From NCBI GenBank assembly GCA_965240325.2, contig OZ251222.1, positions 3,224,001 to 3,288,000 of the forward strand: a stretch of 64,000 nt of DNA. Reading direction: 5' to 3'. The position numbers and the translations under genes are program-made. This stretch comes from Rebecca billardiae RCC1528 (lineage: Eukaryota > Protista > Haptophyta). The first letter of the stretch is position 1. Each line of letters starts with the position of its first letter. The notes under the pieces are model-generated. The model was not told the origin of the DNA. It searched no databases and saw nothing but the letters and a program-made list of their open reading frames with translations. Below are positions 62,246 to 63,568 of this stretch, piece by piece.

Positions 62246-63568
62246 CCTTGGCGACGTCGCGATGGTGCCCGCCGACGCGGCCCCCGCCCCGCTCGCTGGC
62301 CCCGGGTGCGAAGCACACGGGGCTGGTGGGGCGGGGGCCGCATGCCTGTGGTGCTCCCCCATGCTTATCTTCGGCAATCTCCTGCGCGCTCGTCGGCCTC
62401 GCGGCACTCCTGCTTGGCTGCAACATGACTACGACTAGTTCTACGACCTCTACGACCACTTCTTCCTCCCTTCGTGCGCACGCGCTGGCCCTCGCAGGGC
62501 CAGTCGGACGCGGCGTGGGTGGCGGCACGAGCGCGGCCAGCGCGCTCGGCCTGCCTGCCTGCGAGCCTCCATGGATGCGTGCGCGTGGGGCCGGGTTCTG
62601 CCACCGTTCATTGCCAACAGCAACTGGGCACGGACCTGCGACGAGGCATGCCGCCTTTCCCCACGCGCCCTTCAGGTTGTCCCGGCTCAGCCGGTCGCTT
62701 CGGCGGCCGACGGGCCCTCGGCCGGCTCCCCCTTCCCGGGGACTCGGTGGGGCACCGCCAGGAGTGTCTCGCGGCGGGCGGGCCGAGCGCGCGGGTCGCC
62801 AGCTGACCCCGCGACGTTCGATTCGACTGCTCTGCGCTGGCACGTGCACGCGGAGATCAACCACACGCAGCGGGTCCGGGATAGGCACTGGCACCCTCTT
62901 TCTCCAGCCGGCCGCCGGCTGCATCGCCTCGGGGGGCGATGCAGCAGGTGGACGCCGCTGCCACCCATCTGGCCCTTGGCGCCGGCCTCCACCGTGCCCC
63001 TCGCTCCACCCTAGGTGGGGCAGGGGGTGCGGGGTGTGACGAGCCCAGGGGCCAGGTTCCCCAGCATCAAGCACTGCATCTGCAGCAGCCCGCCGGCGGG
63101 CCGGGCTGCGACATCGACTACCACCTCATCTGCTTCATCGCCCAGAGCGCGCTAGGCGGCGCGCTCACTCTCCAAGCCCCTCTTCTGCAGCTGCGCGCCG
63201 CTTGGCCGGCGCGCGGCGACGCGCACTACGACCTCATCCTCATCCAGGCGCCCACGCGGGCGCACGGGGGCGACAGCCGCGGCTGCCGCTTGCCGGAGCT
63301 GCTCGCCGCTAGGTCGGCGGGCGGCGACATCGACTACGACCTCACCCTCATCCAAGTGCTCCGGAAGGCGCTCGGCCGCGGCGGCATCTGCCGTCGCCGT
63401 CGTGGACGTGTGCCCCAGGCAGAGGCGGTGCTCCATCCCGGCCCCGCTCCCGTAGGGGGGCAGGGCTGCGGGTGGCGCACTGTCTGACCTGGTCGGAAGG
63501 CGCGGACGCATTCTATGTGTCTGTTGCACTCTGAGCCTGACGCTTGTCCGATGCTGCCACGTCGTTAA
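62246..63568 (+). mobile_element. Putative non-autonomous retroelement (1.3 kb, hairpin-rich) sharing the LINE 3' terminus, embedded in (TA)n
   Basis: GC-rich block bounded by TA repeats on both sides. Its terminal segment matches the LINE end at 31 of 38 aligned positions, including exact CCACGTCGTTA. No RT motifs. Confidence 0.75.

Follow-up and report, generated by a model that had tools for sequence, protein, structure and literature searches.

A 1.36-kb, apparently non-coding retroposon that shares its 3' tail with an R2-like LINE and lies in (TA)n microsatellites of the haptophyte Rebecca billardiae

The sequence at positions 62246-63568 (+ strand) of the window, by which we mean the whole 64,000-nt stretch of Rebecca billardiae DNA analysed here, is very probably one copy of an apparently non-coding, non-autonomous non-LTR retroposon of ~1360 nt that lives as a parasite of an R2-like LINE. 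We base this reading on the copy number of the family, a 3' tail in common with the LINE, the truncation profile of the copies, their target, the low age of both partners and the lack of relationship between body and LINE. A preliminary description of the locus had proposed a 1.3-kb retroposed RNA. As far as it concerned a multi-copy, 5'-truncating, TA-inserting element that shares only its terminus with the LINE, that proposal stands, whereas the idea of a structured-RNA cargo does not. The length must also be corrected: the full element measures ~1360 nt, and its first ~45 nt are missing from the window copy.

The window copy has a GC content of ~72%, belongs to subfamily A and carries 9 private differences. 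It sits within a (TA)n tract: the target microsatellite continues on its upstream side as (TA)n(TACA)n(TA)n (61903-62245) and on its downstream side as (ATAA)3(TA)n (63569-63615), where the preliminary description had noted a TA tail. Its own 3' tail, which we call type b, spans 63520-63568 (+ strand) and ends in GTTA+A. A pairwise BLAST alignment paired element positions 63531-63567 with LINE positions 56771-56808 (31/38 identical, E 4e-4). Element and LINE are each matched precisely at their 3' terminus, which substantiates the earlier claim of a LINE-matching end; once gaps are allowed, the similarity plausibly extends as far as 63520 in the element and 56754 in the LINE. The tail core occurs three times within the window, at 12570, 56808 and 63567. 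Upstream of the tail, BLAST found no DNA-level similarity between the element body and the LINE, and no protein-level similarity was found to the LINE open reading frame (ORF) or to its metagenomic relatives. The element had been described as free of a reverse transcriptase (RT), a tRNA head and Pol III boxes, and this was borne out: protein comparison found no RT or endonuclease, ARAGORN found no tRNA, and the scan for Pol III A and B boxes found none at up to one mismatch. The Rfam search of the element returned nothing beyond low-complexity noise. Elsewhere in the window, positions 28920-41000 hold very long GGC-rich tandem arrays, with 57-nt units repeated at 32804, 34648, 36492, 38336 and 40180.

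The partner LINE lies in the same window, 5.4 kb upstream of the element. Its full-length copy (4.7 kb; 52112-56808, + strand) contains a 1518-aa ORF at 52130-56686 with an RT and a PD-(D/E)xK nuclease, and ends in a tail of type a at 56754-56808 (+ strand), homologous to the element tail by BLAST alignment. A second, 5'-truncated copy, consisting of the last ~400 nt, is found at 12172-12570 (+ strand), with the tail core at 12570. The ORF matches RVT_1 weakly (E 0.014) and has only eight relatives among 5.8 billion proteins, all unnamed and mostly metagenomic; two distant relatives carry PF00078. In sequence the LINE is very distant from known clades. In five homologues a D...E-x-K motif is invariant (D228, E241 and K243 in the numbering of alignment A1). 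When the last 428 residues were modelled with AlphaFold (pLDDT 64 overall, 70-90 in the core), the best six PDB matches of the model were R2 proteins throughout (finch, silkworm and turtle; probability 0.91-1.00, E 0.003-0.03), followed by other PD-(D/E)xK nucleases. This likeness to R2 comes from the fold search alone, as a phmmer search of the ORF against PDB sequences gave no match. The RT, the PD-(D/E)xK nuclease and the R2-like C-terminal fold together mark the partner as an RLE-type LINE, and from the model it is predicted to be R2-like, with a single ORF.

Several features of the LINE lineage were observed alongside. The contigs of three metagenomic relatives, 45-48% identical to the LINE at the protein level, end in simple repeats: (TCTA)n at L102:4240-4316, TTTAATATATAAT followed by (TATG)n at L103:3780-3830, and GTTAATTA(AT)n at L104:4100-4145. 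The motif GTTAAT is common to the TA-directed members. The home genome also contains a true SIDE of the LINE, L059 (G000:C29:751673-751806, - strand), in which the first 134 nt of the LINE are joined directly to its last ~150 nt.

The element is a repeat family of substantial size. In the 72-Mb home assembly, the best 40 of 508 candidate copies are 92-100% identical to the window copy, all run to the 3' end, and on the 5' side they begin at positions between 1 and 580. Tail types were then counted as sequence patterns across the genome. The type-b tail, which is the element's own, occurs 277 times with up to two mismatches, and LINE-type tails occur 411 times at the same tolerance, a figure that takes in the tails of an intermediate type c, one base away from that of the LINE. 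Type c has 54 exact genomic copies, and a pattern that joins element-specific upstream sequence to a type-c tail was matched 71 times, 52 of them exactly. The element thus totals ~348 tails (277 of type b plus 71 of type c), or roughly 350. The preliminary description had called for a genome-wide copy search and would have been undone by a single-copy sequence; the search yielded this large family, with the 3' end in common, the 5' truncations and the TA flanks that had been expected.

The tail types also bear on the relationship between element and LINE. Type c agrees with the LINE tail at 31/32 positions and type b at 27/32. A near-full element copy, L020, carries a type-c tail, while the type-c change is seen in only three LINE copies and the type-b tail in none. 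Judged by these sequences, the type-c subfamily is the older one and the type-b subfamilies are the younger ones, whose tail has drifted to 27/32 while they were still spreading. An older tail at 31/32 and drifted younger tails at 27/32 leave hardly any doubt that the element and LINE tails are of common descent. Among the 20 near-full copies, at least three subfamilies can be told apart, with L020 in addition. In subfamily B, several copies carry only 0-1 private differences per 1315 nt, and the first 409 nt of the six full-length LINEs show 99.5-100% identity. Both element and LINE look recently active, and the youth of both families fits co-activity, with mobilisation in trans as the presumed connection between them.

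Element copies occupy a consistent genomic site. Among 73 copies, (TA)3+ lies within 12 nt downstream in 61 (84%), compared with 0.67% of random control sites, and within 14 nt upstream in 48 (66%). The junction reads GTTA and then AAT in 61 of the 73. LINE copies are likewise located in TA repeats, and microsatellite targeting seems, from sequence comparison, to be a habit of the whole LINE lineage. Mini-insertions of 14-26 nt of LINE tail were also seen inside TA repeats (in the 3' flanks of L005, L070 and L093), sometimes stacked right behind an element copy; they look like abortive events of target-primed reverse transcription (TPRT). An abundant repeat of unrelated sequence, with at least 175 candidate copies at 96-100% identity, ends in ...CTCAGAAAAGTTT and then in (AC)n(AT)n, a tail into which both LINE and element frequently insert. 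The repeat is present at L031-L042 (for example G000:C16:49016-49407) and also 5' of L004, L021 and L026, and is probably another retroposon family. Three element copies that adjoin an unrelated repeat ending in AAAAGTTT had suggested template-switch chimeras of the U6/L1 type. This idea was rejected, because other copies of the AAAAGTTT-ending repeat have an (AC)n(AT)n tail hit by LINE or element fragments, so that ordinary target choice accounts for the junctions.

The preliminary description regarded the sequence as a large structured-RNA passenger packed with hairpins. The hairpins it listed are present as described, including a perfect 14-bp stem (62277-62290/62328-62341, + strand) that forms the core of a long 5'-proximal hairpin of ~28 bp in all at 62277-62341. 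Further downstream on the + strand are a hairpin at 62909-62954 with 20-nt arms (62909-62928/62935-62954) that are 85% complementary, an imperfect long hairpin at 62986-63037, which recurs in similar form at ~63437-63478 when the sequence is read by eye, and three tandem 108-nt units at 63081-63404, each made of a hairpin of ~11 bp and then a conserved, unpaired motif of ~30 nt. When 150-nt windows were folded and compared with shuffles, however, only three regions folded better than the shuffles, namely 62247-62396 (z -4.2), 62847-63071 (z -2.7 and -3.2) and 63372-63521 (z -4.7); the strong hairpins are thus few, and the remaining windows of the element do not beat their shuffles. The mean folding z is -1.07 for the element and -0.13 for the LINE, whose counterpart of the 3'-proximal region 63372-63521 is not structured (z +1.85). 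A stable fold of the tail was predicted for neither the element nor the LINE.

These data allow an assessment of whether the body is itself a functional structured RNA, be it a module that processes itself, acts like a promoter or binds protein, or else a useful cargo, with the LINE tail merely dispersing it. The z values of -4.2, -3.2 and -4.7 in the three regions speak for such a function, as do the hairpin found at the same place in each 108-nt unit despite sequence differences and the similar partner, seen by eye near 63437-63478, of the 62986-63037 hairpin. The region 62847-63071 moreover folds better on the sense strand (z -2.7 on + and weaker on - for the window around 62909-62954; z -3.2 on + and -1.3 on - for that around 62986-63037). 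In the two other regions, however, the antisense strand folds about as well as the sense strand, which is how plain DNA palindromes behave (z -4.8 on - for 62277-62341 and -3.3 on - for 63372-63521), and over most of its length the body does not exceed the shuffles in structure. The Rfam and ribozyme scans proposed earlier gave no match to the element, including the complete 5' end of L013, even at E 10. A comparison of four subfamily representatives found no two-sided compensatory change, 11 one-sided wobble changes and 9 broken pairs, and the covariation term for the three 108-nt units is unfavourable (+4.2); the number of units is constant in the 20 near-full copies. Two metagenome scans with tail patterns found no homologue in other species that could serve for a real covariation comparison. 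We consider a functional structured body unlikely, and the label of a large structured-RNA passenger is not upheld. A 5' ribozyme was also considered as a candidate and rejected: an Rfam search up to E 10 gave nothing relevant for the complete 5' end of the LINE or for that of the element, taken from L013.

A protein-coding element, with a product of ~351 aa and comparable to half-LINEs, is a very doubtful alternative. The 182-aa ORF of the window copy is a private artefact, being the product of a private 1-nt insertion at 62961; in the 19 other copies the same frame stops at codon 24. The consensus-like copy L009, on the other hand, has a stop-free frame of 425 codons, a length reached by 2% of dinucleotide shuffles (p ~0.02), and most copies, the older L020 among them, preserve this long frame. 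The internal repeat of 108 nt equals 36 codons, and five of nine indels in the region of the frame are multiples of three. Against this, GC content by codon position is flat in the element frame (0.72/0.69/0.76) and strongly patterned in the LINE ORF (0.73/0.53/0.90). The translation is of low complexity, rich in Ala, Gly, Arg and Pro, with no Pfam match at E 10 and a protein-atlas recognition score of 805, far below that of typical real proteins (best match 0.76). By our own count, subfamily-shared variants fall on third positions in 6 of 13 cases, no clear excess. On these sequence properties the element is apparently non-coding, with the 425-codon frame leaving that term less than fully secure.

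The extent of the element was established from its truncated and near-full copies. For an unbiased view of copy length, 40 loci were picked by tail position alone. All 43 newly fetched copies are truncated (43/43; 49-931 nt, median 222 nt), and five more tails in the sampled stretch of the list belong to near-full copies known beforehand. The ~20 near-full copies have 5' ends that form a ladder spanning ~55 nt. At its top, L009 and L013 extend 46 nt further 5' than the window copy and have an identical terminus next to unrelated flanks; a pattern search found this terminus only at these two places genome-wide, from which we take ~1360 nt as the full length. The first 314 nt of the element have 23 matches in the genome, all of them element copies except for one 45-nt fragment. 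That the element is the 3' part, or a long 3' UTR, of a second and longer autonomous LINE, a possibility raised in the preliminary description as one that would overturn it, is scarcely credible: most copies are indeed 5'-truncated like LINE fragments, but some 20 stop within the ~55-nt ladder at one 5' position, and the two longest end at the same terminus beside unrelated flanks, with the 23 matches to the first 314 nt being copies of the element apart from the 45-nt fragment.

The 5' terminus of the element may also be related to that of the LINE, which was defined from six full-length copies. The two agree at 10/13 positions (ATGRCCRASTAGG), a level reached by ~3 in 10,000 random 13-mers, and unanchored local alignment of the two 5' ends was not significant; the resemblance is only suggestive of kinship. 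Separately, a three-codon mini-ORF (ATG, two codons, TAG) is found at the extreme 5' end of both the LINE (window 52116-52127, just upstream of the main ATG) and the complete element (L009:1455-1466). The complete 5' end of L013, a possible master copy, adjoins a 114-bp repeat with a 6-nt overlap, ATGACC. This repeat (L013:2856-2969, - strand; G000:C7:3344940-3345054; many other positions) has at least 361 candidate copies, many 100% identical, and ARAGORN found no tRNA in it.

These properties place the element among tail-sharing, LINE-dependent retroposons: its 3' terminus is homologous to that of the LINE, its 3' end is fixed while truncation is variable, it uses the target of the LINE, and no RT or endonuclease was found in it. 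It differs from canonical SINEs in having no tRNA, 7SL, 5S or snRNA head with a Pol III promoter and in measuring ~1360 nt as against less than ~700 nt. It is not a SIDE either, since its body holds no parental LINE sequence and the 5' termini agree at only 10/13 positions; and it matches no covariance model that would make it an Rfam structured RNA or a self-cleaving ribozyme. The element is most fittingly classed as a new family within the LINE-dependent, tail-sharing retroposons of the stringent type.

For the transcription and promoter of the element, its binding and mobilisation in trans and the details of its TPRT, we infer a cycle from genomic footprints, which were seen for each of its steps. 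A few master copies with complete 5' ends would be transcribed into an RNA that ends in the ~50-nt LINE-derived tail and then UA repeats. The LINE protein would bind this tail in trans, and its nuclease would nick a (TA)n microsatellite. Through its UA end the RNA could then pair with the nicked TA strand and would be copied by target-primed reverse transcription; copying would mostly abort and leave 5'-truncated copies.

Known systems share parts of this arrangement. Hominid SVA is a non-coding composite retroposon of kilobase size that contains internal tandem repeats, lacks a Pol III head and is moved in trans by a LINE, and the element is similar in all of these structural respects. SVA depends, however, on a poly(A) tail and on L1, an APE-type LINE with relaxed recognition, whereas the element has a specific LINE-derived tail (the stringent type) and a repeat number that is invariant in 20 near-full copies. 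R4/Dong is an RLE LINE that inserts at (TAA)n. RLE LINEs often target repeats, microsatellites included; examples are Togen, which inserts at (TG)n, and certain HERO families (PMC4640811). Like our partner LINE, Togen, these HERO families and R4/Dong are of the RLE type, insert into simple repeats and have the repeat unit at the 3' junction.

Of the known systems, the EhLINE1/EhSINE1 pair of Entamoeba histolytica, with an EhSINE1 of ~0.5 kb, comes closest. There, an RLE LINE and a non-tRNA, ORF-less partner have only ~70 nt of the 3' end in common (PMC2996970; Mandal et al. 2004, cited there), and EhSINE1 has internal tandem repeats, is polyadenylated and is flanked by target-site duplications (PMC2996970). 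The two pairs are thus alike in the RLE-type LINE, the ORF-less non-tRNA partner, the sharing of the 3' end only and the internal tandem repeats. EhSINE1 differs in being shorter, polyadenylated and bounded by target-site duplications; the element is ~1.36 kb long, has a GTTA+(TA)n end and a (TA)n target, and belongs to a GC-rich algal host and a very distant LINE partner. The R2 SIDEs of Drosophila are non-autonomous, undergo TPRT via the 3' end of the LINE and vary at their 5' junctions as LINEs do (PMC3414825). They resemble the element as non-autonomous partners of an R2-type RLE LINE, and the partner LINE here has a true SIDE as well, L059. They are, however, built only of parental LINE sequence, a 5' ribozyme and the 3' end (PMC3414825), whereas ~1.25 kb of the element body is foreign to the LINE and no ribozyme was detected in it. 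With microsatellite-targeting RLE LINEs (PMC4640811) and the tail-sharing pair of Entamoeba (PMC2996970) on record, the description of LINE and element as an undescribed pair was overstated; a limited literature search found no (TA)n-specific RLE LINE and no non-autonomous partner of such a LINE.

The pair amounts to a natural experiment on the cis requirements of an R2-like RLE retrotransposon, in which a LINE-unrelated RNA has been copied about as often as the LINE itself (~350 copies each) with only ~50 nt of LINE tail. The drift of the tail at 5/32 positions without loss of activity provides a short list of candidate recognition bases, and the pattern points to the GTTA+(UA)n end as a candidate primer-pairing site. 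Since R2-type proteins are under development for templated gene insertion, a relative that is directed to (TA)n and whose minimal tail is defined offers a useful lead. A bolder reading, which we put forward as speculation with a small chance of being right, is that the last ~50 nt (~27 positions of which are common to the diverged element and LINE tails) and the UA-repeat end form a portable cis-module that alone lets the R2-like protein copy an unrelated RNA of at least 1.3 kb into (TA)n; the hairpins and 108-nt units could then be functional RNA modules, serving stability, RNP assembly or 5' definition, and not filler. Were this true, the pair would constitute a natural, compact trans-templating system with a harmless and abundant genomic landing site. 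The main interest of the element lies in a naturally defined, minimal and drift-tolerant 3' module for a (TA)n-directed R2-like enzyme. For the alga itself, the LINE and the element help to explain how its (TA)n tracts turn into stacks of retroelement fragments.
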